Shown piece by piece: positions 21,721-50,030 of a DNA stretch of 64,000 nucleotides. The notes beneath the pieces were generated by a model that was given only the letters and a program-made list of their open reading frames with translations, was not told where the DNA came from and searched no databases. The stretch's first letter is position 1. Each line of letters starts with the position of its first letter. The DNA comes from Stylophora pistillata (lineage: Eukaryota). The position numbers and the translations under genes are program-made. The stretch is from assembly GCF_002571385.2 (NCBI RefSeq), contig NW_019218176.1:1-64000 (forward strand). The letters run 5' to 3'.

Positions 21721-21772
21721 TTCTGAGTAAGTAGACAACGAAGCTCATTCAGGTAGTTCGGGTCCTTCTAAT

Positions 21773-22500
21773 ATGTCTAACTCTTTACCAGCTGAAAGTG
21801 GTTTCAAAATGGCCTGTTTGAACATTAGCAGTCTTGTCAAACATGTTGACGAACTTAGAGTCTTTCTTGTCGAGTTTTCATTTGATATTTTGGCAGTTAA
21901 TGAAACCAAACTTGACGAATCCATAAAAAGTGTCGAACTCCATATACCTTGCTATGAATTTATCCGTCGTGACAGAAATAGACATAATGGAGGGGTAAGT
22001 TTTTACTTTAAGTCCTCTAATTCTTATATTGTGCATTCCGAGCAAACGCGATTGGTCTTAAAAATTTAACTATAGAAATTCGTAAACCGAACTCTAAGCC
22101 ATTTCTAGTAGTGACATGGTACAGACCTCCCTGTTCTCCAACCGATTTATTTTGGAGTTATCAGTCATTTATAGGCAATTAGATTCTCTCGACCTAGAGT
22201 ACTATTTGTTAGGTGAATTAAACTGTAATTTGGCTTCTCCTACACCTGATACAAACACTCCTCGTTTACTCGAGATTTCGGATTTATATGGGCTCAAACA
22301 ATCAAAAATGAATCAACTCGTAGTACAGAATCCTCATCTACACTAATTGAATTGACTTACACATCTTATGCAGAGAGGGTAGGCTGTTCCGGTGTATTCC
22401 ATATCAGAGATCATAGCCTTGTTTATGAATATCGGAAAATATTTACCGTCTAATGGACACGTCCATCTCTTACAGAAATTTTCGAAATTTTGATCGTGAA
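21773..22500 (+). mobile_element. CR1/L2-type LINE AP-endonuclease fragment, degenerate
   Basis: LNISSLVKHVDELR...AVNETKLD...RRDRNRHNGGV...WYRPP...LLGELNCN...DHSLVY motifs, with frameshifts. Confidence 0.75.
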
Positions 22501-25604: not shown

Positions 25605-28600
25605 CTAACGACGGTCGCTGGCCCATTTTCCCAATCGCTTTGCCACTGCGCTCCCTGTAGCTCGTACTGTTGGCTCGGCATCTTCATCTCCGAGATCTTC
25701 AACTTTGGAGTATTTGGTCGTGTCATAAGATCCCATGTCGAGCAGCTGCAGATATGTCTAAAGGGCAAAACAATAAGAGAGGGTCATTTATGAGCGTCAC
25801 AACGTTCTCTAACGTCAAGTCAAGCAGAAAATGAAACTGACTACTTCAAAGTACGTAAAGGATCCTCGATTTAAAGGCACAGAAGTAATGCGCTTTCTTA
25901 CATAGGTTGGTAGGTAGGCTAGATTGAGCAGAGAAGGTAAGTAGAGGGAAGGGCGGGAGGGATGGAGATTGATGGGTTTGTTGGCAAGACACCTCTTAGC
26001 GTGCTTTATGTTTGAGTATTAGTGTTTCAAAACATAAACAATATTGATGGGCTAAGACAAATAGGAAGAAACGTAACTACTGGCAGGAGCCTTCAAAATG
26101 AAAGCTCAAAGCACCAAAATTCCCGCAAGCAGCCCCAAGAGAAGTTAAATAAAACCAATACAATCCCAAATCACTCCAATTAATCTGGTGAAATCAGCTT
26201 TAAGAGAATAATGGTCTAAGAAGGGTTAAATAATCACTGAGCCCTACTTGAAGAACGTGTTCAATTCTCGCTACAAACCTCTTCACGAAGGTAGGTATCC
26301 ATTCTTCTGCGAAGGTTTTCAAAGGGAGGACGGAAGTCGGGGTTAAAATTCCAGCATCTTTTCATTATAGCATAACTGGAATTAAGGAATGAAGGTAAAT
26401 GCTGGACTGTATGTTATGAATCATGTGATAACTTACCACCGAGAAATCTTAAAGAAAGCCCTTGCCAAATAATGGTTAAAATGGTAAGAAATGTCTGGCT
26501 ATAACGACTGTAAAATTGATATTTTCAAAAATTTTTAAAGTGAAAAGAAAACTTTTAACAAAACAAACTGGTGGCCACTGTTAACTTTTTTCATTCAACA
26601 GAGTTCAGTAACGAGAGCAGAAATCAGATTAGACACAAGACAATGTTTTTCTTCGAAAGGGGGAATTTGGGGTTTTGAATGAAGCAAAGCGTTAGACAAC
26701 TTGAAAAGCAAGACTCACAGTTTATCATCAACATGATCGGGCTTTGGAAGTTTGTATCCATGAGTGACCTGTGCAACTACGTTGCCTTCTGACCATCCGT
26801 CATATGGAATTCCTCCTGTAAACGAATAAAAAATGTTTAAAAATATTGAGATTTAAATCAAAGAGAGATCCACTTCCAGTGCTTGATCAGAGCCTTCGAA
26901 AAATGGTGTTTACTAGCCTGATACTTAATGCAATTGATGACCACTTTTCTATGAAGTAATTTGTAAGAAATGAGAGTTCTTTGTCATTTTAAGTCTCACG
27001 CAAAATGCTACTCGTCTTGTGTGATAGTAAGAGCAAGGAAAGTTCCGAGACAACAGAGATTGAAACTTCGACAATCTGAGCATGAGTCATCATTGGAGTA
27101 AATTTTGGCAAGACAAATCTATCTGTTACAGCTCATCAAACTAACGTCGGTCAATAGAGTCTGACAGGCATTGACACTGACTAACGAGTTCCACATACGA
27201 TACTTACAACATTTCCAGACATGGACGGCCCGGATGTATAAATATTTGATATCGAACATAGTTTGACTTACCAAGGGTAACTATCTCATACAGAACGATT
27301 CCGTAAGACCACCTGAAAAATATTTAAAAAAACACTGCCCAGTGAGTGTTGGATATTAGCTTGGAAATATAAAAACCGAAGAGATAAGCTGCTCAGTGCA
27401 ATACTATACACCATACATACACGTCACTCAAGGTGGAAAGTCCAGCAAGATTTCCCAACAAAATCTCAGGTGGAGTCCATTTAATTGGCAAACAGCCCTG
27501 CAACGACGAGTTTGTGTTAAGAATTAGCGCTATGATACCGATTTGCTCCAAAGGTCATGCATACAAACAATTGTAAACACTACGATTTGTTTGGCACTAA
27601 GGTTGGTGGTGCACTCCTTCAGAGACTTTATAGTGTCAAAATTGATCAGTTGTCATAAATTTTGAACAGCAAAGTCAACAAACTCAGTTGTATTCTGTGG
27701 CACAGCAAAACGTGGGACCATCGTGGCAGTTAAGGCGAGGTTTAGAGTAGAGTTAGGGCCAGCCTTAGGAATCTGTTTGCAGGTGGGACAGTAAAAATAA
27801 AAGACAAAGAAGATGTTCTACCTTTTTGGCATTTCCATGACCATACTTGAAGTTTTGATATGCCATGCCAAAGTCGGTCACTTTGCACACATAGTTATTA
27901 TCAAGGAGGACGTTTCGAGCTGCCAGGTCTCGGTGGATTATCTGCCAAAAGACAAAGATCCAAAATGTAAACTGGCTAACAAATGCATGTCTCTTGTGAG
28001 ACTTACCATAACCAGAGGGAAGATCATGTAGATGTTTGCATGGTTTTACGACATAATTTAATTGACAGAAACAAATTACAATCATACAAAATCAACAACT
28101 TTATTACAATATTCGTTCGAGCGACTCCAATGGACCATACAGTAATTATCGTTGATAACTCACTTAAGCCCTCTTCAAACTATATCTTAGCTCACCACTA
28201 TCTCAGTCTCACAGTTTTCCTTAAGTTCCATGATATGGACAGTTTTGTACAGCAGCGCTCTCTTTCTTGGAATAGCGTTCAAACAGTTGGTCCCTCCCGA
28301 CAACAGCAAAAACTCCTACTACACGACTGAGTCCTTCTATGCATTTACAAAGTATTCTAGAAGATTTCAGAAGATTACCATGCACCTATTTTGACAGTAT
28401 TACAACATAACAAAGCCTAACAGAACGTCCTAGAAAGTTCCACAGAAAAATCACGCATGCAAGTCAGCATGAGTAGGAATCGTAAAAATTTCTGGATACT
28501 TATTCATAACAATGGGTTGTAAGAACCATTGTTCCTAAGGGTGTTCAATACAGACCGAGCAAATACCAAAAACACTGACATCAGGTGACCCACTGACAAC

Positions 28601-31600
28601 ACCAAAGAAACCCTTGGTCGAAGAAACATTCGGAATATCAAACCTGCTTCAAAAAAATGTCATACTTACTCCTCTTGATCCAAGGAATACCATACCAGCA
28701 GCAATTTGTTTGGCAAATAGCACAAGGTCATAGTTGTTCAAAGCTTGAGCTCTTCCTTCTCCAAGATAATACCGATCCTTAATTCCCCGGCATTTTCTCA
28801 TGTAGCCAAGCAAGTCACCGCATGGCAAGTATTCCATGATAAGGATTGGATGAACTTAAAATAATCCAAAAAAGGAAGAGATCAATCCAACAAAAGAAAA
28901 AAAAAAAACAGTCAAAGGTAAAAATATACTCAGTCACAATGTAATTACAATTGCCAAGAATAATGCCTTAAAGTGAATTTGTACCTTGTCTAGTGACGCA
29001 GCCAATGAACTTCACTATATTTGGCTGATTGCTTTCACCGAGAATTTTTCCCAACTCGATCTCTCTCATCAAACATTTCCTTCCTTCCTCCCCTGCAGTG
29101 GCTGCAATAAAAACGATATACTCTATAGCCAGGAAAAAAGACTTATTGACGAATTTTTTCGCGGAAAAACTTTGGGTAAGGATTTAGACCTCACATTTTA
29201 GGAGGTCTCTGAAGCTCAGTTTGTGGCGCTCACACCTGCGAAGATGGAACTGGTTAGCGATGGAATCCTTTCTTACAATTGAAGCACATGTTTGCCATCT
29301 TCAGATGTTTTATTTCTACTGAACATTTATTATTGTTTTCATTAAATATGACTTTGCATGAATCTCTCAGAGTGCCTTAGTTGACCCGTGATAAACAACC
29401 ATTGGAAGTGCCAAACAGGCCAGCCTTTGCTGTAAAGTATTTATCTACGTGATTTGAGGAGAGATAGTTGACTGGATCTTACGTGTGAAGCATTTAGCAG
29501 CAACTGTGCGATTTCCAGGCCTCCCATTTGGAGAACTAAGAAGAGCTCTCCACACTGCTCCAAATGACCCACGCCCAATGACCTCTTGAAGCAGAACACG
29601 GTTTACTTCAACCTCCCATTCGTCCACTTCTATATTCGACAGCTCCATCTCAACTGCCTGCCCTTGATTAGGACTAAATACCATGAAAATCAAAATGATA
29701 AATATGGTGCAATAAATATTATAAATCAGAGTATATGTGATCAAGAAAAAAGAAATGAAGGAAAAGGTTTGTTTTTAAACTACTTGACACATTTCTTCAA
29801 ATTATGAAATAAAAATTAATCTCAGGTTTGCAAAACAACCTTTTCTTGTGCAGAAAAACGAAGACTGTAGAACAACTCGTTCATGCAGACAAGTTAATAT
29901 CGAGAATCCGTCGACAGTTGCAAAAGTTCATTATTCATTATATTTTTCCAAACGGAAACTTTTAATGAACCTTTTTTGAAAACTACATGAAAAAGTTCTA
30001 TCGCGCTTTTCTTTATCGATCCCAAAAATCGAAAAGTTCGAAATACGCCTAGATAGAAAATGTAAATTTCTTGTTATGTTGTTACGTTTAAGTCGGAAAA
30101 GTGAGCCGTTGAAATAAAGTACTTCGCGTCTTTTTCGCAGAGGTAATACAACGTTGTTGAGGGCTTAAAATGAATTCAATTAACACCAAACTTCACCCAA
30201 AATAAGAAAAACTACTTCCATCCATTTCTGTTATGTAGTATTTTTCGTTCACATCGATATTGTTATTTTCTAAGTCCTCTAAGCAACACCCTCAAAGAGC
30301 GCATAAAATGAGAGCGAAAATGGGTGAAATTCAACCCGATAAAAGTGTATCTGGTACCTCATATTTTAATTTTTTTACTGCATATTAGTAAAAGTATTGT
30401 TATTATTCATTTCTTGGGTAAAATTTGATGCTCTAAATCGGAACGCTTCCCTTCGAAAATACCATAAATGCTTGTATCGTTGGCAAGCAAAATGATAAAT
30501 ATGGTGCAAACAAACGCCAATCTAATTGACCCTCTTTAATCGAAAAAGTTTGAAAATTAACGTTAATCTTGGACATGTTTGCCTTGTATTCAACTTAACA
30601 TAGATTAACATATTAAATCATACCTTCAGAGTTACGTGAGAGCTGAGAGAAAATTAAATTAGAGCCGAAAATGTACTTCATACGCTCTTAAAATGGAAAA
30701 GTTGTGATAATTTCTTAGTGGGTCTCTCGGATGACTCTTAAACATTTCGAAAGCAAGTTTTTTTAATTTGTCTGTTTGTTTATTTTTTTTTTCATATATA
30801 TCAATAACTCCAGCGAACACAGAGGACGACAGTAATATTACCATTAAAGTGCGCTGTCGCACTCTTTAATGTAGTAATAGGGAAGCGATATGCAGATAAC
30901 ATGCGTTATATTGCGTGACATTGATATTTTCTTACTTTAAAGGCCAAAAGTCGCAACATCTCGCCTTTCGGTGGATTCATCTATATCTACAGAGAGTTAG
31001 TTTGCAAAGCAACAGATGAAAAAAAAAACAAAAACAAAAAAAAACAAAGGATTTAGCATTAAGGAATCAAGAAATAAGTAGCTCACCGAGGTGGAGGTGC
31101 TGCTTTCATAATTGGCTTCTCTTGAATGTAGCCGTTTCATTATATCAACTGTGAAACTGATTGTGCTTTGACAAGTAATACGTAATTCACTTGCGGATTT
31201 TTATCTCGAGATGTTTTGTAAAACCTTTCAAACATCTTACGGAATAGTTTAGTTATCTGTAATTTTCTAAGCTACAAGCTGACCATAACCGCGACTAGAT
31301 TTAATTTTTGAGTTTAAACGTCTTGATATGAATAACTTAACTTGCTGTTTGTCTACACATTTAGCACCATATTTGACACGAACACTTCTGTCATTTTCGA
31401 AGGGAAGCAGTGCGATTCCGAGCAAGATGGCTGGATATTGGCCGAGTTTTTTTTCGCACTTTTATGGCCGAGACGAAGTCGAGGTCCATAAAAATGTGGA
31501 AAAAGACAATATACATTAACAATATACACTGACAGATTGGGTGGCTAATCAGAACACAGGATTCGCTTCATCTTGCCCACGGGCACTGCGAGCGATTCAA

Positions 31601-34600
31601 TAAAGCTTTTCATAGGCCATTGAATTTGACTTGTATTTTACCTCTGCGAAAAAGACGCGAACTATTTTATTTTAACGGGTTACTATTCAGACTTTAACGT
31701 GACAACTTAAAAAGAAATTTAGATTTCAAAAGAGATAAAAGGATCATCTGCTCGCACGCAAAATTTAGAAGTGGGATTGCATCGAGTTGTGGCGTACGAA
31801 GTTGCCGTTTACGGGGGAGGGGGTAGAAACGGCCATCTAGGCGTATTTTGAGCTTTTCGATTTTCGGAGAAAGAAGAGTGCGATAGTACTTTTTGAAAAA
31901 AAAAAGAAAAATTAATTACGAAATTTTGCAACTGTCGGCGGATTCTCAATATTTATGGCCAGTGGCTCTTAACATTTAAAATGGAATGGTTGGCATGACA
32001 TTAAGACCCCATCTTCAATTTTTTTTTTTGTCAAATACATTCCAATTTACAGAGTAAATAAAAAATTAACTTACAGAGGCATAGCAACAGCTGTAGTTTC
32101 AAATGTTAAATAAAGAAAGAGACAAAGAAGGAAAAAATTTTGCTTAACTTTTAACTCAATAAAAATGTTATGCACTTAGGTGGTGAAGAGAGTTTCAACA
32201 AAGTAGTAAAAAAAGGAACATAAAAAGTGTCACAACTAATAACAATGATAATGATGGTTAAAATATTGTTAATAACTAACAATAATTTATTATTAGTGAA
32301 ATCAGTGGTTTACTCAGAACTCTATGTGCCAAGAAGTTCAACGGTGCATGGTAGATGATAAATCAGAAACAGTAAAAACCTGCCAATAGTACCCAAAAGG
32401 TTTTTCTTCTGCAAACCGAGATGATATTAAATCTACCTAATAGCAAAATTGAAGAGAATTGGAATAGGGGTGAAGTAAAAGTAAGCATAAGCTAGTCCAA
32501 TTTTTGCTTCTGACAACTATTTAGTGGAAAAGGTACCTAAGACAAGATATGAAGAATGAGTCTTACCTGTCCTTCGACGTTTCCAAAAATACCAGCATAC
32601 GAGCAAAATAACAATGACAGCAGCCACTGATCCAACAATATAATACCACACCAGGGATGGACTCCTCACCCTCACAGCTATTGGAATACGTTAAACACAT
32701 GACCATTAGCCAGTCGAAGGTAGCACATGTGATCACGATAATGGAAAGGTTTTTACCCAGTATTACCCACCCTTCCATGGATTCTATCTTTTGCTAGAGT
32801 TTCCCTAGCACATTAGAAGTGGCTCCTATTTTATGGCAGAGATTCCCAGAAAGGTTAATCAAAACTACGTTGTAGAAGAAATAACCGAATAACCATAACG
32901 GGAAGTCTGTTTACAAGCAAAGTGGCCCAACAGGCCAGTGCTTAACTCCCGATCAAAAGTATTTCTACTCCCATCTTCTAGTCTATTGCAGGGTTACCCC
33001 CCAAAGTAGTAGAGAAATAACCTGCTAATTGGATGAAGAACAATATCCATTGCCCAATAGGAAACAAATAATCATGATGATATTGGAACGAATTATACCG
33101 GTATCAAAAAGAAGATTCTAGTGCATTTAAAAGGCCAGGGACTCAAATTTTCATGCGAGACACGTACTTACCACAAAAAAACAAAAAAAACAAAAAAAAC
33201 AAAAAAACAACAACAACAACAACAATGAAAACAAAAAAATAAAAATAAAAAGCAGCCAATAGCATGTTTAAAACAATACAAAACTTTCAGGTTACATTTA
33301 AATTGAAATATTAATTGCTGTTAAATAATAGATTGTTTCTAGGACACTACAATAATGCCAGCTTACTTATTGTCACAGTGGAGCGGGCCACATTTCCTAG
33401 TCTGTTACGAGCTTCACAGGAATATACACCACTGTCCTCCTCCACAACCTTTGCAATAACCAGGTAACTTTTTGTCTCATTCAGTCGCGTAAAGATGTCG
33501 GCTCTCTTCTTTATTTGGTCTCCATTTTTTTTCCAAGTGATATTTACTGTTGCTGCGTTGGCAATGCAAGTTAACCTCAGCTCATTACCTGAAGTGAGGG
33601 TTGGATATGGTTTTGGAATCAATTCCGCAGTTGGTTTTTCTGTGTTAAAAGGAGATATTGTATATGTATACGAATCTTGATTTCTTTATGGAAAAAAAGA
33701 ACTTACTCTCAATACCTTAATAAGGCAACTAGTATAAAAACGAAGTGATCCAAAAGCAACCCTCCAAACGGAATTTCCAAGATGCTTCTAAGTAACCCCA
33801 GACCTAGCCCTTTGTTTCTAATAATATTATCATGACATATTGCACCATTCAATATACAAAACGCTGCAGTGATAAAAATCTATCGGATGAAAATGACCAG
33901 AGTGACCATAACCTAATGTCAAATTCATCACATATAAAAAAGTAATCTCAAACAATTGGTTAATGGCGCATGTGCAACATTTATCCTTCCCACAATTCAT
34001 TACAGTATTTTTCCTAGATACATTACACCCAAGTTAGCATTTGAACTTGTTGACTCAAATTTTCTGGGAGAATTTCCAGGGGTATCAAGACTCTATCTCG
34101 ACATAATTATTATAAGAACCAGTCGTGACACACTGTCAGTTATTTTTGGTCAACCTTCAGACTAGCCAACATTAACAACATCAAAGAGGAAAGAATTGTA
34201 TACTATTATTGCTAAAGTGGATCCATCACCATCATTACCCTAATAGCTATTAAGTTACAGTTACTATTGTTACCATTATTACAATCCTCTTCATCACTAT
34301 CACTAGTATCATTATCATCATTATCATTATTATTATTATTGAGCCTACCAAAAACTTGAAGTGTTGCTGAAGAACTTATTGTATTTGCTTTGTTTTCTGC
34401 TGTGCACTCATATGTTCCTGCCATTTCCTTTTTTGTTCGCGGTGTTTCCAGGAATGATTCCACGAATAAGTCCCGCTCAAAATTCTTTTTATTAATACCT
34501 GATTGGAGTTTACCGCCTTTAAACGTCCACGTCACTTTTGGTGTTGGAACACCTGAAGCACGGCAAGTAAAGTTGACAGGGTCTTCATAAGTAACAGACT

Positions 34601-37600
34601 GATTTACTGGAGACAATAAAATCCTAGGAGACACTGAAAATAAAAGAAGACTACAATCTTCAACCAAGGTTCTTAAGAGACAACCAAATAACCACAAGTA
34701 ATTTAGCAGTAATTAGATGCAACAGTAAATTTGGAGCCTCTGCCTACACAAACTTCCTGAAGTAAAAGAATCATTTTCATACATTAGATGGGAGTAGGAC
34801 AGGAGGATATTATATTTCGAACGAGTGAGAGCTTCCCTCAGAAAGATAGTATTAGCATGAAAAGTGTAATCTAATATATTATTTACATAATACTGTAAAT
34901 ATCATGTAGTACCTAGTAGTGACATCATGGCGGCCGGATGCAATCTTACAATGCCTGTCACCACATGCGTGTTTCTATTACTCAAGACTTATGCAGAAGA
35001 CTCAATGACTCTCAAAGAGATTGATAACACTTTCAGGCTCTCCCCAGTAAAGAAGATAATTTCCGCAAGGCGAAATATCAGTCCAAATAACACTTCCAAT
35101 TATTATCGACTGGAATACAATCATCTTCCAGTTTTTTCAAATTACTAACCTGAAATTATCTATTGAGTCACCACGTCACAAGGGATTCATACGTATTATT
35201 AACCCTACAACAATTTCATCATTTAGGTCTAAATTGGAAGATACTGACTGGTCGCCAGTTCATACTGCTATTTCGGTTGATGAGCGTTATGACACATCCT
35301 CAAACCTTCTTACGTCTGCATATCGGAAGTCATTTCCTCTTAAGCCTGCAGGCCCTAAATCCCCACGCCCTTCAAAACCTTGGTTTTCTCGAGGTCTTTT
35401 TGCTTCTTGTAAATGGAAGAATGCTCTTTACAAACAATTTCGGTTAAATCCTACTACACTTAACAAGTTAAGATACAACAAATATCGTAACAAATACAAT
35501 TTTCTCATTACACTTGCTAGGAAAAAATATTTTCATGACAAACTTTTCTCTGTTAGCTCAGACTTGAGGAAGACATGGGCAGTTATTAAACAAGTAATCT
35601 CTAAAAAGAAGCCTGAGCTACATTTTAGTCATATGAAAGACAGCACTGGCACTTACTCAGATCCAACTCAAATAGCTAAACAGTTCAATAATTTTTTTGC
35701 TAATATTGGGCCTTCTCTGGCGAATAAGATATCATTCTCTCAGTCTTCCCACAGAGATTTCATGATTGGCCATTATATAAATTGTTTTTACATTACCCCA
35801 ACTTCTCCGACAGAGGTTGCCAATATAGTTTATTCTTTAAAAAATAGTACATGCAAGGGCTCTGATGGTCTCTGTATCTCCCCTATAAAAGAGACCATTG
35901 ATTTAATAGCTGTGCCTTTGTCTCATATTTGTAATCTGTCATTCTCCCATGGTCTCTTCCCCACACTGCTCAAGACAGCAAAAATACTTCCTATCTTCAA
36001 ATGTGATGACTCCTCTTTGCTTTCTAACTATAGGCCTATTTCCATTCTTCCCTGTCTCTCCAAGGTTTTTGAGAAACTCTTTTACATTAGACTGTTTGGT
36101 TTCCTTGATAAATTTAACATCCTTAACCGCTTTCAATATGGCTTCAGACCTCACTATTCTACTACAATGGCTATTCTTGAATTTGTTAACAATGTTTACG
36201 AAGGCTTTGAAAATAATGAATGCACTGTTGAAGTTTTCTTAGACCTTAAGAAGGCATTTGATGCAGTCAACCATCACATACTTAACGAGAAATTAAACTT
36301 TTATGGTATCCGTGGTACTCCTCTAGCCTGGCTCAATAGTTATTTGACTAAGAGGCAGCAATATGTTATGGTCAATGGCCATGTGTCTTCCAATAAAACA
36401 GTCAAGTGTGGGGTCCCTCAGGGTTCAGTTCTTGGCCCTCTCCTTTTCCTCTTATACATGAATGATATTTTCCACTCCCCTAGTTACCTCTCTTTCATTC
36501 TCTTTGCTGACGATACCAAAATTTTTTTTCGTCATAAAGACTTGGCTACTCTAGAAAACATTGTTAATCAAGAGCTTTCTCATGTCTTCTCCTGGTTTAA
36601 TGTAAACAAGCTTACTATTCACCCTGACAAGTCCAAATGCATTATCTTCCATCCACGGCGTAAAAAGATTGATCTCTCCAAAGTGAACATCTATATAAAT
36701 AACACTCCTGTAACCCGGGTGGAGAAATGTACATTTCTTGGAATTATCATTCATGAAAATCTCTTATGGAAACATCATATTATTACTGACTGTGATAAGG
36801 TCGCTAAGTTTATAGGAATTTTACGTATATCAAGACGATATCTACCCTCGCATACCCTAAAAATTTTATATAATTCTCTTTTCCCACCATACATTAATTA
36901 TTGTAATTTGATTTGGGGGTCTACATTTGCCTCCTACCTCGAACCACTTTATAAACTACAAAAGAAAGCCATTCGTATTATTACGTTTTCTCCTCCACTA
37001 ACACATACTAAACCTCTTTTTTCTAAGCTCAATATATTTTCGCTTCACTTACTCTACAAATGCCATATATCCTGTTTTGTTTTCTCATATTTCAATCGCC
37101 TTGTGCCTGCCACTCTTTCTTCGCTTTTACATTTCAATCGTGAGTTTCATGATTATTCAACTCGCTCTTGTTTTAACTTACACAAAATAATTCTCGCGTA
37201 GGTATCAATTTGCTATTTGTTCCCAAGCCCCAACTATTTGGAATGATATCCCGCTGACTTTCCGTAATAGCCTTACCATTAGTAACTTCAAAAAGAGGCT
37301 TAAATTGTACTTCTTGAACCTGAATTAAATTTTCAGCCATTAAAATTGAATATTATACTGAACCTCTGATATACCTGGACTATTGTTTATTACTTAGATT
37401 AATCTACTGCATTTTGTAAATTTGTGAACATTATACTGAACTTCTAGTATACCTCGATTATTGTTTATTACCTAGATTTGATTAGATTAGATTAGATTAG
37501 AATAACTTAGATCAGTCTACTGTTCTTTGTAAAATTAGTCTTTGTCTCTGACCATAAGCCATTTAAGCCTCTGGCTTTGGCCAATCTTAGGAATTTACTT

Positions 37601-40600
37601 GTATGACACAAACAATAATAAAGAATAAATGAATAAATACAACATGGCTGGCCATACCAAACAAGCAACTTCACGCAGTAGATGCACTGGAACTTACAAC
37701 ATATTCCTTCTCTTCGCTGGCGACACCGAAATCTATAACAACCCACTTGTCACCTGTAATATTCTACTATTGGTAGCAGGCGACATCGAACCTAACCCTG
37801 GTGAGAAATACATATGTTTTTCATGTCAAAGAACCACTGCAGTGACCCACCGCAAAATCTTATGCTCTTCCTGCAATAGCAGATTCCATACTAAATGTGG
37901 TCCATTGAAGAAATATTACAAACACCCCCAAAATGCTGCCGTTCACTGGACATGTAGCTTATGACATCTTAAGGCTTTGCCTTTCTGCTCAACACCAACT
38001 GAGGAGCTTGTTTCGCTGATTTCTAAAGGAGATCTAAATGTCTCATAACCCAACATAGTTGATCAATCTCCTATTGAATGGTTCAAGCCAAATATTATAG
38101 ATTATTATAAATCGAACTTAAAAACTGGTCACCTCAACGTGAACAGTATCTTTGGGAAAGCAGACGAAATTATTGACCAACTAAGAAAATGCAAGAAATG
38201 ATAATAGGTAAATCAAAGTACGATATCATTATGAACTTCTATTTGAAAACAGTGCTATTGAAACCAAAGACCAACTCAAGATCCTGGGAATAAAGTTGAA
38301 TAATAAACTATCTTTCCAGGAACACATAAAGGATATCCTTAAAGTGCTACTGCGACGTAAATTTTTGCATTCTATTTTCTCAATTTTCTGGTGTTAACAT
38401 CACATTTAGACCCAAAACTATAAGAATAAGCGTAAGTTTCTCAAATTTGACCACGTTAATCCTTAAAAACAGCGCCGCGAAGACATTAAAAATTCTTCCG
38501 CCATTGCTCGAATAACACACTGGAGAGCCTGCGAAAATAACTACAGCGGGTTTAGTTGTGACGTCATTGACTCACTTCGACAACGTCGCGAAGGCATGCC
38601 TTTACAAGAAATATGCAAAGAAAGCTGGGGAACAATTCTTTCGATTTTTATTCCTTCTTTCCTACGGAACCAGAAAACAACTCTCCTGGCATACCAAATT
38701 AGCCACGTTTGTTGAGTCGTTGACGTCACTTCCGTTCTCGACCCAGTTTCTTTGTCTTCGCACGGAGTTCTGTAGTTCGAAGAATAGCAGCCGTTTAGAT
38801 TGCGAATCTACAGGGAAAATAATATTACTTCTCGATGGAGTTTTGCCTTAAGATTTGGCAAATTTGTTACTTAGGGTAAGTACTTTCAACCTCCGAGGAG
38901 AAAAGAAAAGGTGCATTTTTGGTCGCAGAAGCACTTTAATAAAGTCTATGCAAAAATTGGGGCACTGAGACGCATAAAAAGCTTAGTACCAAAGAACACC
39001 ATGATAGCTCTGTGCAGAAGCTTTATTCTGCCTCATTTCAAATATTGCAATCCTCTTTTCATTGGTCTTTCAAAAACGTTAAGTAATAAACTAGAAAAGG
39101 CAAACCATTATGGTCTAAGAACAGTTTTAAACTTAAATAACTCAGTGTCCTGTGAATCTGCCCTTTAATCAATTGATATGAGATCATTATCAAATAGCCG
39201 CATAGAACGATCACTTGTCATATTTTTTAAATGTTTCAAGAAAAATGGCCCATATTACAGTAGTAATATTTTAAGCCCCACATTCTAACTTATAATTTAC
39301 GTAACAGAGGCCATAATGTTAAACAGAAATCTTGCAGTACTCAATTCATGCACAACTCCTTTTCACATATTATTTCTCGAATTTGGAATCAGTTACCTTC
39401 GCTGGCAAAGTCTGCTGAAAATGTGTCAATTTTTCGTAGATCAATTAGCAAGCTCGATTTTCCAGGTTGTCAATGTAACAATTGTTTAAATTGATATTTA
39501 TCATTTCCAACAATTATTTGTCACCACTATACAAATTGCATCAACTCATTGCATTATATATTATATTTAGTATCGAACAACTTTTTTTTTGATATTTTAT
39601 ACACATAACGCTTTTTATATTTTCGCTGTCAATCACTTTTGTCATGAGCCTCTGGCTCGGGAGATCTGGGCAACCACTCCCTGTGTAATTGACTTTAAAT
39701 AAATGATTACAGTAACTATTATTATTACTATTACTATGAAGTATGCAAATCAAGTCAAATTTAAAAGCAAATGAATAAACTTGGTTTGTACAAATCCTAT
39801 TTAAATGTCTAGCATAAAAAAAAAGCCTGTTCAAAAAGTTACATGTACTGACTGGCCAGACCACAGCACCGGTAGCTATGTTACCTACTTGTACATGCAC
39901 TCTTTGTGAGAAGTTCCTGAGTTCTTTAACGTCCCCTGTTAACCAGTACAGAGAAGATGAAGGAGACAGGGCATACAGTCTATTGGCCTCATCCGAGAAT
40001 ACTAAAATGTTTAACCATTCACCACCGTCATAGCATATCCAGCACATTCTCTTAGGTTACTTAAAGATCTTCAGTGGTGGTCCGGTCTAAGGTTGAACCT
40101 TCGACCTGACGCATAGTAGTTCAGGGCTCTACAACATGAGCTTATGGAGCATAATTTGTAAATATTAATAATTTTTTTTTCTTATTTACCAGTAGCTGCA
40201 ATCCAGAAGGAGGTGCTAGCTTTTCCAGCCAGATTTTCAGCGGCACATTCATAGAAACCCTCATCATCAAAAGTCACGTACTTAATAATTAACGTGTTGT
40301 TGTTGCCAAGAGCTTCTCCATTCTTGGTCCACTTGATAGATACTGGAGGATCGCCCCTTACAAAACAAGTTGTTGTAAATGTGGAGTTCAATGTAATTGA
40401 ACGATTCTTGAGTCCAGGATTTAAATGTGGTGGTACTAGAAAGCAAAATTTAAAAAAGCGACAATGAGATTATCTTCACAGGTACATTGGTACCTCGATC
40501 TTGGATGTAAACACTTTAAACAAATAACAGGTCAGCAACTTTTAAGAATTTCATTCTGCAGTTGCTATCGACATGTCCGTTACTTAGATGGCTCAAGACT

Positions 40601-43600
40601 AAAAAAACTTTTGCCAAATCCTTGCCATTATTGGATGTGGATTTGGCACTATTTGAGAGGTACATTTTTCTGTGTTAAAAGAGACAACTTATGTTAAGCC
40701 TGAAAAACAAGGTCACTCACAATATCCTAGTAACGCAATTATCATGGACATGAAAGAGTCCAAAAGCACCCCTCTAAACGGAGCTTATAAGTTGGTGGAA
40801 CCTGGTTTCAAAAGAGTATTTGTTTAACGTTTATATGGGCCACCTGATCAAAATGAGAGTGACCAGATAAAAATGTCAGAAAGCAATCAGACGAAGAACG
40901 TCACCCCAAACAATTCGTGAATGGCACATGCGCAAAAGATAATCTTTCCCCGAATCCATAATTGCACAGAATACCTTAAACCTAAACAAGTACCTACTTG
41001 AATTGGCTTTCTTGTCTTAGAAAATTTCCACAAGTATGATTGAGAATCAAATCTAGAGCAGTCATTACAAAAACCAGCCTAACGGGCTCTCAATGTTTTT
41101 TGTTCCACCTTTAGACTGGTCTCAATTTATTAGTAATATTTCATGCATCAGCACCAGAGATAAACTCCAGAGAGGAAGGTATCATCGATTATCATTGTTA
41201 CAGTGGATCTATAACTATTATCATAATAACTGCTTAATTCATGATTATACAGCCATTGTCATTTTTTTTAAAGAACCTACCAAAAACTTCAAGTGTTGCT
41301 GAAGAACTTAATGAATTTGCTTGGTTTTTTGCTGTGCACTTGTATGTTCCTTTCATTTCCTTTGTTGTTCGTGGCATTTCTAGGAATGATTCCACGAATG
41401 AGTCTCTCTCAAAATTGGTTTGATTAATACCAAACGGAAGTTCATTATCATCAAATGTCCAGGTCACTTTTGGCGTTGGAACACCTGAAGCACGGCAAGT
41501 AAAGTTGACAGGGTGTCCATCAATAACAGATTGGTTTACTGGAGACAATAAAATCTGAGGGGACACTGAAAGTAAAAAAAGACCACTTATGATCTTCAAC
41601 CAAGGTTATCAACTGAAGATACAACTAGACAACCACTCCAGGTCATTTTGTGGTGGTTAAATGTGAGAAAAGATTTTAGAATCCACTAACTACATGTATT
41701 TTCTGGGGTAAGAGACATTACCTGCACACGGGATAAAAGATATCACATTTATAACGTGTAAGTTTCCCTAGCTGCCAAAAGATATGATTTACTTAGTTCT
41801 TATTAACCGAGCGGGAGGTCTGTATGGGAGAATCTTGACTGAGGTCGCTAGTACAGAACGGAAAGTGCACTCCAAAATCCGTCAGAAGGAGGTCATCTCG
41901 GGCAGATTTCCGATTACGAAATCAGAGCTCCCTTGATGTTTTCTTCCTGATGAAGGCCCTATTTAGCATTTTAGATCCGCAAAACAGAGTAGAAACGAAC
42001 ACATACTTCGTGTTCGCTCATGAATTCGAATTAGCCCTAAGATATTTGTTTTGTTTTTTTCATTGCTTTCCGTACAGAACAAACGCAGTGAGGTCTGTAC
42101 CAGCGACCAAGGTCAAAATTCTCCCATACAGACCAACCTAGCTCGGTTAATAAGATGTTTATTATATGGCTGTGTCTAGAAAGCAATGCAACATTATGTT
42201 CTTTGTAACTTTTTTTCTAGACCGGTCTAGATGCCAGTCTAGATGGGAAAATCTAGACCACTTTCAATATTGATTTCAGCCAATCAAGTTCGTAAATTTG
42301 GTAGTTCCCAGTCCTCGTGAGACACAGCCATACCATAAATGAGAATATTAATTGTTACCAAGTTGAACATAACAAAGGTGACTTTCCATTTCTTTTCTAG
42401 ATATCAATATTAGTGAGGTATTCAAATCAAAGAGAAGTGAATAAATGAATAAATTGGGCTTGTGGAAATTCTATTTAAATATTCAACATAAAAATAAAGC
42501 AAACAGGTATTTCAGTTTCTCTATGTTCAAAAGTTAGCTAGTTTCTTCCTCTCAAGCTGAATGCAGTTCCAGAAAGGTTGACAAACATTGAAAATACCCA
42601 AGTTAAGTGGAATTCGACTTACCAGTTACATTTATCGAGAAGGAGGTGTAATTGTTTCCAGCCCGATTGTAAGCAGTACATTTATAGATACCTTCATCAT
42701 CAAAAGTTACAGGCTTAATGACTATTTTGTTGTTGTGACCAAGAGCTTTTCCATCCTTGGTCCAATTGACAGATACTGGAGGATCACCCCTTACATAACA
42801 AGTTGCTATAAAAGTGGAGTTCAATGGAACTGCATGATTCTTGAGGTCAGGATTTAAATGTGGTGGAACTACAAAACAGAATTAAAAATAAAAGTTACGA
42901 TGAGATAATCTTCACAGACTTTTTGATTTGGTGATGACCCATTGCTCCAGCCTATGACTACCAAATGGCAGCTGGGTAATATAAATTAGCTAGGAAACTA
43001 CATCTTGGAATCAAAGACCAAACTTCTCGGTTTATTTAATTGGTAGAGAAAATTATTTTTGGAACTAGTAGATATTCCTCACTCATGTATCAAGCTCCTG
43101 AAGTTAACTACTACGTCCTAACAATTTGTCCTCAGAGACATTACACAAATGATTCTGCACAGCTATAACCAGCAGTAAACATTTATTTCCATTTGGAATT
43201 TGAGATTTAAAAGTTTATTTTCATTTTAATTAATAAGATAATCTTCACAGGGAGTTACATTGCAAATATTGTCATGGCAGACTCATGCTTTGGACCTGAG
43301 AATAATGGGAATCCATTAGAGATTCCAAGCTCATGAATCAAGTTTGGCAAGTTAATTAATATCCCTTATCAAATGGTGAAGTTTTCTCAACAGTTCATTA
43401 ACAGTTCTGGATGGAGAGACAGGCACCACGCTTAAGGGAAGACTGTCACCCTCAAGGATATTGTAGAATGATCTTGCACAGTTAACCAGCACTACAAACA
43501 CACTGTGTGTACTATGTAGATTTGGAGTTTGAAATCTAAAAGTTAATGTTGACAAAATGTGGAGATTTTAACTGGATGGAGAGTGGGATGTGTGAGTGTA

Positions 43601-46600
43601 TAGGTACTGTTGCCTCACTCAAGAAGACAACACAATAATACTCACCACCCCTCGAACCCATAAAGTGATGTTAGTCCAGAGTCCATCAGGCTGCAGTCTA
43701 TACAATTGAATGATTGAAATGCAATTTGAAACCGAAAAACTTACCTTTAACTGTAATATTAATATTTCCAGTGGAACTGCCTCCGACATTTTTTGCTTCA
43801 CAGGTGTACAGTCCTGCATCTTCCTTCTTTATATCATTGAAGGAGAGAGACATGGTGTTTCCTTTCAATTCGTTATTCTTAAACCAGGTTATCTGTGGTT
43901 GAGGTTGACCTTGAATGATTTTACAGGTCAAAGTCACATTTTCTCCTTCAATGATGAAATTGCTTGCTCCTGAAACACTAACCTCTGGTCGAACTTTGAA
44001 TATATAAACAAGTAAAAAAGTTAAAACAAAATGGCATGGTCATACACACACTATAAGTCTCCTAGAAGGCAGTTATCTTTTGGGTTACTACCATCAATCT
44101 ACAAAATGGATTTTAACATGACTAATTTGAACATATGAAGTCTTTTTCCTGGCAAAAATTTAAAGACCTTACAAAAAAGAAATGCCAAAAGTTTTTTAAT
44201 CCTCAATAAATTGAATTGAAACCCCTTTTTATCAGCAGCATCCACATGTAGTAACAGTACTGAACTACTTTTAGTTACTAAATTCCTAATTAATTTTAAA
44301 GACAGCTAGAATGATGTGTTGATATAATTAACCAACTAGTTTTAGATTTTACCTATACTTTACTCACCTATAACAGACACAAGTATGTTCTTAGGTGTGC
44401 TTGTGACCCTATTTGGTCCTTTATTCTGTTTCATGGTACAGATGTATGTTCCATTGTCTCCTGGTTGTACAAGACTAATGCGTAGATTGCCACTGGTAAT
44501 TTGAGCAAATCCTCCCCCATTAACCAATAAAATTCTTCCTTGTTTGCTCAAAGTTATCAGTGGAGGTGGTATTCCTTCAGCACTACAGTTTATGATACCA
44601 GATGTGTAAGCAACAAGGCTCTGCTCGTCTTGAGTGTTTTCAGTGAATCTTGCTGTTGGAATAAGCAAATGAAAACTAACCACTTACCATAGCTGCACTG
44701 GACAAATGTCACCTAGTCTGTACTGTGTGTCCATATGCTGAATGCTAGGCACATTTACTGTTAATTTAACATGCTCTTAACTAAGGCAATCAAGGCCTTC
44801 TCAATGTGTTGAAAAGCATTTACTTACCATTAATGTAAACTGTGTAATACTGAACATATTCCAATCTGTAGCATTCATATGTTCCTCCATCAGACAACTG
44901 CACATTTTCTATGACCAGCTCACCATCTTTTTTGGTCTGGACCCTCTCAGAAGGAGAAGTTCTATTTTGCATCTTTTTACCATTAATAATCCACCTTGCA
45001 AAACTGGTTTTGTTAAGTATTGAGCAGTAAAGATTTTCTTTGTTACCAATATCAAAGAAAAGTTTCTCTTTCCCCAATACTTGTTTGTTCTCTGAAAGAA
45101 ATATTTTTCAATAGCACAATAATAAGTTTATCATGTTTCAACTTTTTGGTACTAGCTAGATTGCAAAACTATTAGTATCTTGAGCCTATATGTCGCAAAC
45201 ATTGTAAACATTCAGTACATGTATAACTGGTCATGTGGACTGTTAACCTTCAGGAATTTTCGTCAGGGTATTAGTAATACCTCACTTACTTGGTTGACAC
45301 AATGCTTGAGAACCTTTGCCATCTCCTTGACATTGACTTGGGACATTAAACTTTCCATCAGAGCGAGCACAAGATGCAAGTTCTTCCTCATTTCCAGTGC
45401 AAGAAACATCAAACATTACTGTACTAATGTTCTCATTCTCCACATTTGAGCCAATGAACTCAGCAAGGGCCTCTTGAAAGCCAAGTTGACGACAAATAAC
45501 TTTGACATCATTGAAATCCCAATCACTGGTACATATTTTTCCCCAATTCCCTTTATAAAATACTTCCACTCTTCCACCATACTCTACATTTGCACCATTC
45601 AAGCGAACGGGAACTGATAAGTTCACAAAAGAGTGAGCAATTAGTGAAGATAACATACAGTCAATTATAAAACAATGGAATATTGATAAAAAAGGGATAT
45701 AGCAGGATTATGAAGATATTTAAAAAGTCAAAGTGTTCAAACAGCTTCAGATATCTAATACGATTGTAGGAGTTCTTTGATGGGCAGTTGTCTGGGTATC
45801 ACCTTGAGTCTTTATAATTTGCATCTTCAGTTACAATTTAACCTAATCCTAAAAAACAGCCTAATTTTTAATCTTTGTCAAAAGACTGGTACATCATTAC
45901 TAATCAAAGCAAGAAAGTATGCTTTCGCAAGGTCAACTAACTGAAATAATGATCAAGTCTATGAGGGTATACCAGAATAAAATGTAGAAGACTGAAACAG
46001 ATATGACCACAGAATCCAAATGCATGATTACTACCTTTGCAGAGTTGCAATTCTTTTGAAAAGTGGTCTTCACATTTTCTCAGAATGGTGGTACAATTGT
46101 AGTTTATAGAAGTCTCTGATTCATTGTTTCTGTCTTCATACCATCTACCATAGTCACCGCTGTTAAAGTATCCCATTGCCATGCAAGTCAAGTCTTCTTC
46201 AACTTTATTCCAGTTACTGGTGCAAAGCTTTTGCCAGCTACTATTTCTGTAGATTTCCATTTTACCACGTGATGGCTTCCTCTCCGTTGTAAAACGTAGT
46301 GGAAATACTGATGAAAGAAATAGGACAAAATTGCCTGTCTATTTTAAATTAAGGCCATCTTCACTCTGCATATTTTAATTGTTCAGCTGATCACTCTGCC
46401 AAATAGGTACTGAGTTTCACTAGTTTACCAATTCTAGGTTTAATTTATCAGAAACATAATTGCTAAAGCCCACAGTTAAATGTTTTCTTTTAGGATAAAT
46501 TGAAAAAAAAAACATAATTAATATTGCTTGCATCAGACATCCAATATTTTACTATGAAACTGAATATTTCAATCATAATTGTCAAGCAAATTTAGTGCTA

Positions 46601-48000
46601 AATGTGTATGGATGATAACAATAGTAGGTGATGACACTAAAATAACAAACATTTGCAATAATAATGTATGTAGAGGATTGGATGATAATATAAAATGATA
46701 GAGATCATGATCCTGATGATAATAGTGAGTGTGAAATTGATAATAATAATTATAGTAATGACTATAACTTAAATATTCAAGCATAAATGTAATGTTAATC
46801 CTAATTTTGGAAAAGGTGAATCTGTGAAAAAGTAGATTAAAAGGCAAAGGCTTTTAGTAGAACTAAACCTTTTAAAAAGGGGTTAAAAAAACTATGATTA
46901 TTCTTTGGACCATCCATGATGTCTGTATTTCAATGAATGTAATATGCCATGTGATTCTTATTCACATGCAATGATTTCACCATCTGTCTGTTACCTTCAT
47001 GGCAGCTGGAGATGTTGTTACATTCCCTCACAAGTGCTCTGCTCCCATCACAGTTTTCCCAGCCATATGCTGGTTCTAGATTAGAACATTCTCTGAACCT
47101 TATCTGTATGCCACTGACTGTTTTGGAGCAGACACTCCAAGCACTCCACTCATTCCAGCCACCATGGACTAACAATGTTTTAATAACAAAGAGTTGAGAA
47201 ACAACAACTTCAAACTTTACCTGGAAGAAGTCGATGTGATCACTTTCTTTTCAGAAATGATGTTTTTTCACTTTGCCTGATCATCATTTTCATTCTGATC
47301 GTGAAACACATAAATTACTAGGGAAATATCGAGTACATTACTTCTGCCTGGGTTAATACACTTTCTTAATTGTAACAAGAGTGTTGGTAAATTTCTAGTT
47401 TCTCATTTCCTTATTTTGTAGAGCTTAAAACTTTCCATTCTATGGTTTCTGTGAATGGGAAGTACATAACACTGATTACTGACTCTCCCTTGGACCGGTA
47501 CAGTTATACACTCGTCTTTGTATTCCACCCCACAAGATACATTGTAGCTCTTTTATACTCCCTAGGATGATCATTGTGTTAGACATTAACATGCTGTAGT
47601 ATATACTGCTAATTCATTCAACCTTATTACCATATCAAAAAGAATAAGGTGAGAAAAAGCAACTTTACCAAATCAAAATACCAACATATGGTAAAAACCT
47701 TGACTGTTGCTCATTAATATCTACAGAATAATGTAAATTGGCTAAAAAGGGGATGGAGCACCTGAGCTTGAATGTTAATAATCATAATGATAACAAGAGG
47801 CTGGCATAACAACGATTACTCACTCTTACCTGGACAATGATTTATGTTGCAAGCTTGGTTCATGTGACTAGGTCCTTGGCAATACATTCCAGGCCACACT
47901 CGCGGTGGATTGGTACAGCTGCGATATCGTCTCTGCGATCCACCACCACAAGTTACACTGCACCTCCCCCATGACCCCCATGAGGACCAACCACCATCAA
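25605..48000 (-). CDS. Multi-exon receptor tyrosine kinase: at least 2 TSP1 - 2 SRCR - 8 Ig - TM - FGFR/RET-type kinase; 5' end not located
   Basis: GT-AG exons read by hand. TSP1 48000-47830 and 47168-46995. SRCR 46307-46035 and 45613-45290. Ig 45091-44828, 44652-44368, 43993-43745, 42868-42623, 41565-41281, 40435-40190, 34633-34349, 33639-33367. All ectodomain exons are phase 1-1 with lengths divisible by 3. TM 32677-32567 ([26 protein letters not shown]). Probable juxtamembrane exon 31148-31087. Kinase exons ~29672-29483 (GRGSFG, VAAK), 29101-28985, 28854-28670, 27941-27822 ([11 protein letters not shown]), 27497-27421 (PIKWTPPE), 27312-27272 (WSYG), 26815-26719, 26375-26279. Last exon 25757-25605 ends in TAG. 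No stops found in these exons. Confidence 0.85.
28027..28552 (-). mobile_element. Probable solo LTR in a kinase intron
   Basis: TGTA...TACA ends, with AATAAA near the minus-strand 3' end (~28100). The flanks GATCA / GACCG could be a decayed 5-bp TSD. Confidence 0.45.
34925..37640 (+). mobile_element. 5'-truncated CR1/L2-group LINE with a 655-aa open RT frame (35234-37201), antisense in an RTK intron
   Basis: [41 protein letters not shown] and FLG motifs. APE tail (NHLPVF) upstream. 3' UTR ends in AATAAAGAATAAATGAATAAA. Confidence 0.9.
37640..39710 (+). mobile_element. Internally deleted second LINE (2A-like motif, PHD finger, APE start, RT C-terminus, 3' UTR)
   Basis: [12 protein letters not shown]; CFSC...[12 protein letters not shown]...WTCSL (PHD); [10 protein letters not shown] (APE start); [16 protein letters not shown]...[14 protein letters not shown]...LPHFKYC (RT thumb); tail ending AAATAAATGATT. 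Confidence 0.75.
38343..38935. mobile_element. Kolobok-like MITE (593 bp), TTAA TSD, AG...CT ends
   Basis: TTAA|AGTGCTACTGCGAC ... GTCGCAGAAGCACT|TTAA (13/14 TIR match). Removing it restores the LINE frame KDILNKVYAK. Confidence 0.85.
39850..40143 (-). mobile_element. tRNA-derived SINE, degenerate
   Basis: Minus-strand head AGCTCATGTTGTAGAGC...GGTTCAACC (A/B-box-like). The central block (CATCCGAGAATACTAAAATGTTTAACC on +) is also seen at ~19740-19805. Confidence 0.5.
41799..42154. mobile_element. Palindromic MITE interrupted by a 216-bp insertion (41858-42073)
   Basis: Outer inverted ends CTTATTAACCGAGC / GCTCGGTTAATAAG. Inner element ACGGAAAG...CTTTCCGT is flanked by ACAGA direct repeats (41853-41857, 42074-42078). 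Confidence 0.65.
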
Positions 48001-50030
48001 CTATCATCAAATTAATTAACATGATTAACATTTTAACATGAGTAACTTCCTGTCAATATTGTAAATGGCATGCCTATACTGCTACTAGTCCTTTCAATTT
48101 TGAAACCATTGTGAAAGCCCAGGCACATAACTTGGCTTAAGGGTGCATTGTCTACCAGAACCCCATATTCACAATAATTATGATTCCAGAAAATGTTTTT
48201 GTGGGATATGACACATTTTTGATACCCCAACAGGAGTCAAGCCTGTAGCTATGATACTTAATAGATGCTTCAGCACTGAATCACAATGCAACTAAACACG
48301 TTTATGCAGACTGATCAAGAAAACATTCCTTTTTCTTTGTAACCAGCCAGGAGGAGAAAAAAAGTCCTATTTCCCAAAAATAATATGAGCTTCAGAGTTA
48401 AAGTGTCCCTGTCTGAAAAAGTATTCCAAGAGACAAAACTGGTGGTCAACCGATTTGGCTGAAACTTGGCACAAAAGTTGAGTGTGATATAATATATTTC
48501 AAAAGCCAGTTGGCTCATTTCTCTGACGGTTTGTTCTGGAGTTTCAGGGGGGTCCCATTTGTGGCCTATGGAGCACCAAAAATTCATTCTTCTAGGTGGC
48601 AATTTGAAAGTGCTATAAAACTCCATTGGTAAATTGTGCTGCCAAATGAATTTGACCATGGACACTGCTATAGTGGAGCTTCTAATTCATAAATATAACT
48701 TTGTTCTCAAGCGATTAGACAGAGAGTGGCCTGGGACTAAAGTTAGGTCAAATTTGAGGTCAAAATCACTACCCAAAATTGCCATTTTTCAAAAAAAACA
48801 TAACATTTACCTGCCTTCTTGCCTGACTTTCATACCAAATCCAGTATCCCTTACCGAATGGACAGATATGTAAAGTATCTGCAACTATCTGTCTCATATG
48901 TTACAGTACTGCACAATGTCTGTAATGGTTTTATTCATATTTGCAGAATATCTGCAATTATGTTTGTACATATTTCACAGATATGTAGGGACTTCTTTCA
49001 AATATCTGCAAAGTATCTGAGGGAATTGACATATATTTAACATATATGTAGGTGATCAAACAGAGTAAGTTAGAAATCGAGGACCTAGCCATCTTTTAAA
49101 TTGTCATCATATGCCAGTCATGATATTTGAATTTCCCCTACTAGGAGACTATAATTTATTTGATTAAATGCTGACAAATAATTGAGTGTCCAAACTACCA
49201 AACTTTTAAACAATTAACTGTGCAAAACTACTAAGATCTCTATGGAAAATAGCATATTGAGTGACATGTAATGTGTCCTTCAACAAGAACAAATACTGAT
49301 TAAAACTGTGGGGTCCAGAAAAAATTCACACAACTAATTTTCTATCTGCACATCAACTTACTTGCTTTGCGAATCTAACATGAAAACAGCTCAACCTTTT
49401 AATAAACAAGTGGGTCATTGTTTTCTTCAAAAGTGTTTTGCGTACTTGGATCAGCTGTCCCGCCATTATCGATCGTCAACTGAACCTAAATCTGAAATAA
49501 TTTCATTACTGTTTGGTTCTTCTACGTTTTCATAAACATGTGAAGGAAGTTCTTTATAATTTTGTACTTCGACGCAATCCACAAGTTAGCCTGAATCAAA
49601 AACTGTGTCCTGCAGAGTGAATCCCGACCATCCATTTTCAGCTGTTGAAGAGAATTCGAAACTAGCGATCCATCGATGTGATCTTCAACACAGTGGAGTT
49701 AATAGAGGGGTTGGTCTGAAATTATTACAGCCTGGAGCTTCGATTAAAGCATTCCTCACAAGACAACTCAAGCTTTGGTAGCAAAGGATTTACTACGGAA
49801 CGAAAAGGTGTTGAAATGCTTGCGTTGCTTTAATCAGTCGATTAGGCCGCTGGATGGACGAGGGGTGGAATGGGACCAAAAGTAAAAAACGCGTTTGATT
49901 GGATATGCTGAAATTAGCCATTTTCAAAACGAGCGGCGGTCTGGGTACGATTTGCCACCATAAAGGCTCTTGGGATCGTTTGGAGGGACAGCGTGAAGGT
50001 AAACAAACGCACAGCTGACGTGTGACAAAC

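Follow-up and report, generated by a model that had tools for sequence, protein, structure and literature searches.

Evidence for an expressed receptor tyrosine kinase gene with TSP1, SRCR and Ig domains in a recently expanded family of the coral Stylophora pistillata

Exons encoding TSP1, SRCR and Ig domains lie in series upstream of tyrosine kinase exons in a 64,000-nucleotide stretch of the coral Stylophora pistillata (assembly GCF_002571385.2, contig NW_019218176.1, positions 1 to 64,000; hereafter the window). Do these exons form a single receptor tyrosine kinase (RTK) gene and, if so, what kind of receptor does it encode? The original prediction, made from the DNA sequence alone, had proposed one gene joining all of them. 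Our analysis favours, with a probability of roughly 0.78, a single expressed gene on the minus strand, with 22 exons or more, which encodes a single-pass RTK of at least 1416 residues and is a member of a recently expanded coral family. The predicted product has the order TSP1-TSP1-SRCR(short)-SRCR-Ig x8-transmembrane (TM) segment-tyrosine kinase-tyrosine-rich tail. The architecture proposed earlier was thus largely confirmed, and the size and youth of the family, together with a contrast in selection between ectodomain and kinase, are notable additions to it.

Domain-bearing stop-to-stop frames were found on the minus strand between 48052 and 25608. From these, 22 exons were delimited, running from 48000 down to a stop codon at 25605-25607, the very position where the predicted gene had been bounded (Table 1). 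The splice sites were derived from sequence alone; GT-AG borders and matching phases were present at all the predicted borders, and the summed exon length of 4253 nt corresponded to 2 leading bases, 1416 codons and the stop. All ectodomain and TM exons (13/13) were of phase 1-1 with a length that is a multiple of three, and such uniform, symmetric phase-1 exons fit the assembly by exon shuffling that had been suggested for this gene. The phases of the kinase introns were mixed yet matching, and joining the exons restored canonical motifs, such as SD/V/WSYG across K5/K6. The open, phase-consistent exon chain of the original prediction therefore held, and seven of the junctions derived here proved exact in RNA.

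Database searches were run exon by exon and not with the joined protein. Frame-by-frame Pfam analysis revealed two TSP_1 exons, two SRCR exons, eight Ig/I-set exons (27-64 bits) and PK_Tyr_Ser-Thr on four kinase exons (K3 and K4, and below the cutoff K5 and K8). The two SRCR domains (one abbreviated), eight Ig domains and TM segment were all located, by Pfam matches or translation, on the minus strand at the positions where they had been placed. For TSP1 the earlier claim was 'at least 2'; two are indeed present, and the count in transcripts is exactly two. TSP1a carries WSSWGSW and CSVTCG, and the second motif is degenerate in TSP1b. The SRCR superfamily signature was found, SRCRb scoring 75.7 bits and SRCRa 28.9 bits, just over the Pfam cutoff of 26.1. 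A profile built from five SRCRa copies matched only SRCR structures in PDB, such as CD163, PIT54, LOXL2 and CD6. A single TM run of 23 hydrophobic residues followed by KRRR lies between the Ig and kinase exons and is kept in paralogs. The tyrosine-kinase catalytic motifs were complete in the translations, including DVWSYG, a PxxWxxPE-type sequence (PIKWTPPE) and CW..P..RP, and the kinase looks catalytically complete from these motifs, as had been predicted.

Expression of the gene was checked by mapping RNA from four runs of four studies (X1, X2, X10 and X22; three assembled and one as raw reads) on 42600-48599. All seven predicted TSP1a-to-Ig4 junctions (7/7) were recovered as spliced joints with CT..AC ends, i.e. 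GT..AG on the minus strand: 47830>47168 (TSP1a-TSP1b), 46995>46307 (TSP1b-SRCRa), 46035>45613 (SRCRa-SRCRb), 45290>45091 (SRCRb-Ig1), 44828>44652 (Ig1-Ig2), 44368>43993 (Ig2-Ig3) and 43745>42868 (Ig3-Ig4). One RNA contig spanned TSP1a-TSP1b-SRCRa-SRCRb and another Ig1-Ig4, and a loose RNA end at 42623 consisted of the first bases of the Ig5 exon. The RNA was assigned to the minus strand by a stranded run. Exon depth was high in the RNA runs, and 0.25-0.43 of the sampled words of 40100-48100 were present in them, the exon share of that stretch being 0.31. X22 showed variant letters in TSP1a. Spliced RNA thus rejects, between TSP1a and Ig5, the possibility of a separate gene for the TSP1/SRCR exons. 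Further downstream, a word search with the Ig8 exon returned only unspliced single-exon open reading frames (ORFs) and no transcript evidence; the contigs found served as comparative loci.

The collinear exon order recurs at eight loci in this genome and on two independent coral metagenome contigs, and from such order and from phase the chain would continue from Ig5 to the kinase. On contigs C392, C423, C739, C1200, C433, C1011, C908 and C1428 (C423 and C739 being read without the middle parts of their loci), a paralogous K1 is preceded at a distance of 10-20 kb by TSP1b and/or SRCRa exons of the same strand. On C1011, a single strand carries TSP1a, TSP1b, Ig exons and K1-K9 in about 21 kb. 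A scaffold from the Tara metagenome carries TSP1a, TSP1b, SRCRa, Ig3, a duplicated Ig block, Ig8, TM and K1-K3 in ~14 kb on one strand, and allelic scaffolds of this homologue continue to K9. A 216-kb metagenome contig from another sample harbours SRCRa, SRCRb, Ig3, Ig6, Ig5, Ig8, TM and K1-K9, with a long terminal repeat element in an intron. An apparent 309-amino-acid open frame around K1 on C2030 was rejected as a retrogene, being the product of a run of N.

Although one special gene had been envisaged, the locus instead belongs to a family of some 15 to 38 genes that vary in their number of Ig domains. Searches of the species' own assembly (397.6 Mb, 5513 contigs) gave about 20 copies of the K1 exon at ≥73% identity and about 18 at 53-62%, 15 copies of the short SRCRa exon and 14 of the TSP1b type. 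The number of Ig exons varied between copies. Within the gene, Ig4 and Ig6 are 65% and Ig5 and Ig7 76% identical in amino acids, which indicates that a two-exon unit was duplicated. In the Tara scaffold L029 (3629-10345), a 3.2-kb block is tandemly duplicated with 94-95% identity and comprises an Ig8-like exon, one of 47 residues that is similar to part of SRCRb, an Ig6-like and then an Ig5-like exon. Judging from this tandem duplication, the number of Ig domains in the family appears to be changing by unequal crossing-over.

Ratios of nonsynonymous to synonymous divergence (dN/dS) were estimated by the Nei-Gojobori method against paralogs and homologues. For the kinase, dN/dS was 0.08-0.15 where at least three exons could be compared (0.24 in one two-exon comparison), as expected of constrained genes and not of decaying copies. 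For the ectodomain it was 0.27-0.76, with 0.27-0.45 in most comparisons and 0.76 against the closest paralog, where single exons reached 1.1-1.9 on small counts. The dS to the nearest paralogs was 0.12-0.22. The family is therefore young, with constrained kinases and fast-changing ectodomains; by these estimates amino-acid sites of the ectodomain change 3-6 times faster than those of the kinase. Such fast change is compatible with diversifying selection, though not proof of it.

Several points weigh against reading the 22 exons as one intact gene. Read evidence spans TSP1a to Ig5 only, and Ig5-K9 rests on phase and collinear exon order; homology is known exon by exon; and since the paralog kinases are 80-97% identical, some of the RNA records may come from sister copies. 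The locus might then comprise two transcription units, or give a dominant secreted isoform, such that a TSP1-SRCR-Ig matrix protein ends in the Ig5-Ig6 or the transposon-bearing intron and an Ig-TM-kinase gene starts downstream. A retroelement in the 5.5-kb Ig6-Ig7 intron is in keeping with such a division, as is the confinement of read mapping to a region short of Ig5>Ig6>Ig7>Ig8>TM>K1. However, Ig7, Ig8 and TM each begin in phase 1 at an acceptor, and therefore none of them can be the first coding exon. In addition, the Tara homologue packs everything from TSP1 to the kinase into its ~14 kb with only small ORFs, called in prokaryote style, in between, and order and strand are kept at the eight loci of this genome. 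A division into two units is accordingly very unlikely. The 5' end also tells against an intact copy. The acceptor at which the TSP1a exon starts is in use and in phase 1, and loose RNA ends at 48000 show that a preceding exon is spliced to it, so that at least one exon lies upstream and the N-terminus is further upstream as well. A first or signal-peptide exon was looked for but not found. The 30 bases spliced onto TSP1a in X10 and X22 are absent from the window and from this contig, and they match a repeated element of ~1.15 kb that has no copy on this contig. Five near-copies of this 30-base end occur elsewhere in the genome, within that element, with a GT donor directly after them and no family exons nearby; the element looks like an exonised transposon. 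In the Tara homologue, too, the 2.3 kb preceding TSP1a showed no signal-peptide exon. The present copy may have suffered damage to its 5' end: a stack of transposons could have cut off the signal-peptide exon, leaving transcripts that start in transposon sequence and yield no properly secreted receptor, with the sister copies being the functional ones. Unspliced contigs over 48001-48474, roughly one quarter as deep as the neighbouring exon, agree with such damage, as does the sole near-upstream in-frame ATG (48031), which gives only an 11-residue hydrophobic start that is not conserved in the Tara homologue. Nevertheless, every exon is open (22/22), the kinase is strongly constrained relative to its nearest paralogs and exon depth in RNA is high; moreover, a long first intron is common in genes, and N runs interrupt the contig, which extends past the window. 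We consider it unlikely that the gene has lost its start in this way, and retain the reading of one expressed RTK gene.

Some further features of the 5' region were recorded. Copies of the ~1.15-kb element (L023-L027, on C7, C694, C783, C431 and C645 of the S. pistillata assembly, G000) are 87-92% identical and have short terminal matches. Over 48400-48599 the RNA of the stranded run came from the strand opposite the gene (first mate on minus, 21.8); depth was high in X2 and X10, where the sequence differed from the window by two substitutions and one inserted base. This segment is probably a transcribed repeat. Six raw reads of X22, with three start places, joined donor 47830 back to acceptor 48000 ('goes back 171'). 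Such a back-joint means that the exon forms a circular RNA by itself or else that TSP1a is doubled in tandem in some allele or paralog; this assembly contains no such pair.

What, then, might such a receptor do? By the standard RTK mechanism, the ectodomain would bind an extracellular ligand and the receptors would dimerise, the activation-loop tyrosines (AYQNFKYG) would be trans-phosphorylated, and the tyrosines of the tail would recruit adaptors. We infer from sequence that the ectodomain is secreted and the kinase active. The domain types, namely thrombospondin type 1 repeat (TSR; WxxW, CSVTCG), SRCR and Ig, suggest that the ligand is a glycan, a matrix component or a cell-surface molecule. 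An immune, symbiont or allorecognition role is a hypothesis with only indirect support, from the fast-evolving ectodomain and the recent expansion of the family. The receptors could instead be developmental, adhesion or matrix-sensing ones, comparable to FGFR/VEGFR-type Ig or UNC5-type Ig+TSR receptors. TSR, SRCR and Ig domains are generally common in matrix and guidance proteins, and the ectodomain dN/dS below 1, mostly 0.27-0.45, fits relaxed constraint without positive selection. On the other hand, the family is large and recent (about 20 close copies), its Ig number varies by ongoing tandem duplication, and the overall dN/dS of 0.76, exceeding 1 for single exons against the closest paralog, is seen more typically in recognition families than in receptors of core development. 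A function in development, adhesion or matrix sensing is thus quite possible, if somewhat short of even odds. The bolder proposal, that in stony corals of this lineage a young, rapidly diversifying family of 15 or more germline receptors places pattern-recognition-type modules (TSR with CD36- and glycosaminoglycan-binding motifs, SRCR and variable Ig arrays) on a tyrosine kinase and senses algal symbionts, microbes or allogeneic tissue as non-self, is on the unlikely side.

If this proposal were true, cnidarians would have a system of innate recognition coupled to a kinase, of a kind not described in them. Studies of how cnidarians recognise symbionts and pathogens have centred on secreted or short-tailed SRCR and TSR proteins, and here the same domain types sit on an active-looking kinase. 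The expanded family with its quickly changing ectodomains therefore offers candidates for turning coral cell-surface recognition into a signal. It would also illustrate how receptors diversify in nature through phase-1 exon shuffling and unequal crossing-over.

Table 1. Exons of the predicted receptor tyrosine kinase gene, and the retroelement frame within it, with the evidence for each.
Feature	Coordinates	Strand	Evidence
TSP1a exon, phase 1-1, not the first exon	47830..48000	-	TSP_1 42.4 bits (47998-47831); acceptor atag/TT at 48000; joint 47830>47168 in X1, X2, X10
TSP1b exon, degenerate TSR	46995..47168	-	TSP_1 26.0 bits (47166-46996); joints on both sides
SRCRa exon, abbreviated, family-specific SRCR	46035..46307	-	SRCR 28.9 bits (46305-46036); joints on both sides
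SRCRb exon, complete six-cysteine SRCR	45290..45613	-	SRCR 75.7 bits (45611-45291); joints 46035>45613, 45290>45091
Ig1 exon	44828..45091	-	Pfam Ig_3/I-set; SRCRb>Ig1 joint in X2, X10, X22; Ig1>Ig2 joint with 12 raw reads
Ig2 exon	44368..44652	-	Ig_3 34.4 bits; joints; X10 contig spans Ig1-Ig4
Ig3 exon	43745..43993	-	Ig_3 64.4 bits; joints
Ig4 exon	42623..42868	-	I-set 50.3 bits; Ig3>Ig4 joint in 4/4 runs; loose end at 42623 is Ig5 start
Ig5 exon	41281..41565	-	Ig_3 63.9 bits; loose-end sequence matches from 41565 onward
Ig6 exon	40190..40435	-	I-set 49.0 bits; predicted phase 1-1 splice sites
Ig7 exon	34349..34633	-	Ig_3 59.0 bits; predicted splice sites; order Ig6-Ig7-Ig8 kept in paralog L016
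Ig8 exon, membrane-proximal	33367..33639	-	Ig_3 51.4 bits; order Ig8-TM-K1 kept in L011, L017, L020, L021, L028-L032
TM exon	32567..32677	-	Translation; weak TM_ErbB1 match, 17.9 bits, under cutoff; conserved in paralogs
K1: juxtamembrane, GRGSFG loop, VAAK lysine	29483..29662	-	Translation; 62 own-genome matches
K2: alpha-C glutamate region	28985..29101	-	87-100% identical in most copies, 71% in most distant
K3: hinge	28670..28854	-	PK_Tyr_Ser-Thr 29.7 bits; best PDB matches CSF1R, TIE2, RET, KIT
K4: activation-loop tyrosines	27822..27941	-	PK_Tyr_Ser-Thr 41.5 bits
K5: PIKWTPPE	27421..27497	-	Pfam 18.4 bits, under cutoff; splice sites and translation
K6: completes SDVWSYG	27272..27312	-	Splice sites and translation
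K7	26719..26815	-	Splice sites and translation
K8: CW..P..RP	26279..26375	-	Pfam 20.9 bits, under cutoff; splice sites
K9, last exon: tyrosine-bearing C-terminal tail and stop	25605..25757	-	70-89% conserved in paralogs
Reverse-transcriptase ORF of retroelement, not part of the protein	35234..37201	+	RVT_1 122.7 bits

The reverse-transcriptase ORF in the Ig6-Ig7 intron is antisense to the gene, encodes 655 amino acids and looks intact. In the TSP1a-TSP1b intron, two short, overlapping frames at 47406-47613 (minus strand) bear a faint resemblance to a decayed TSR exon; a relic TSP1 exon suspected there was rejected, as it gave no Pfam match and its RNA depth was almost nil (4.75). Downstream, a separate same-strand gene at 15034-17573 (minus strand) contains exons for VWA (46, 40 and 22 bits) and one for TSP_1 (~16013-16132), a VWA+TSR combination that is termed TRAP-like in the cnidarian TSR literature. 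The region 20000-21500 is of low complexity and very strongly skewed in GC and AT (0.28 and 0.33 in 20001-22000), and each of its strands contains long open frames of repetitive sequence (SLSLSL on minus, DRDRDR on plus).

Like the Ig-RTKs (the FGFR, VEGFR/PDGFR/CSF1R, TIE and RET group), the coral protein is predicted to be single-pass, with membrane-adjacent Ig repeats and a tyrosine kinase of PxxWxxPE type. It differs from them in its N-terminal TSP1 and SRCR domains, its eight Ig domains and the lack of a long kinase insert, EGF, FN3, cadherin or acid box. PDB searches with single exons matched K3 to CSF1R, TIE2, RET and KIT and K4 to Eph, TIE2, TYK2 and CSF1R, and gave no tyrosine kinase for K1. 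As no class was consistently best across K1, K3 and K4, orthology to any RTK class is not established. The FGFR class has 2-3 Ig domains and an acid box, in place of which eight Ig, TSP1 and SRCR domains are found here, and native FGFR was not among the best PDB matches of K1, K3 and K4, a weak test when made exon by exon. The PDGFR/VEGFR class has 5 or 7 Ig domains and a long kinase insert; the ectodomain composition is different here, the exon chain has no room for an insert, and K3 aligns to CSF1R without one. The TIE class combines Ig, EGF and FN3, and neither EGF nor FN3 gave a Pfam match on any exon. The claim that no classical RTK class has this set of domains is therefore upheld, and the kinase would stand close to the Ig-RTK group as an orphan that cannot be shown to be an orthologue of FGFR, RET, VEGFR or TIE.

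Lineage-specific RTKs with shuffled ectodomains occur in sponges, choanoflagellates and Hydra, for example the Geodia Ig-RTK. The coral gene resembles them in carrying a conserved tyrosine kinase on lineage-specific ectodomain modules and in the expansion of the family, and differs in the TSP1+SRCR+Ig combination; no description of a TSP1-SRCR-Ig kinase was found in the literature searched, which is a part of the whole. UNC5-type receptors share Ig and TSR domains with the coral gene, but the UNC5 tail is a ZU5/death-domain one and not a kinase. With its complete SRCR domain (SRCRb), the coral protein resembles the SRCR pattern-recognition proteins CD163, DMBT1, MARCO and SCARA5; these are short-tailed or secreted and signal through partners, whereas the coral SRCR domains sit on a kinase. 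A search of a representative library with the SRCRb exon was uninformative, as the best 150 matches were all multi-SRCR proteins that swamped orthologues with one or two SRCR domains. In a survey of cnidarian SRCR proteins, SRCR was combined with CUB, trypsin, Ig and similar domains and in no case with a kinase (PMC5119243). Likewise, a survey of TSR proteins in cnidarian symbiont uptake listed TSR with astacin, VWA, trypsin, ShK and Ig, the word kinase being absent from it (PMC5446238). The same study described WxxWxxW and CSVTCG as glycosaminoglycan- and SRB1/CD36-binding (PMC5446238), and TSP1a of the coral gene, like the TSR proteins of symbiosis, carries both these motifs.

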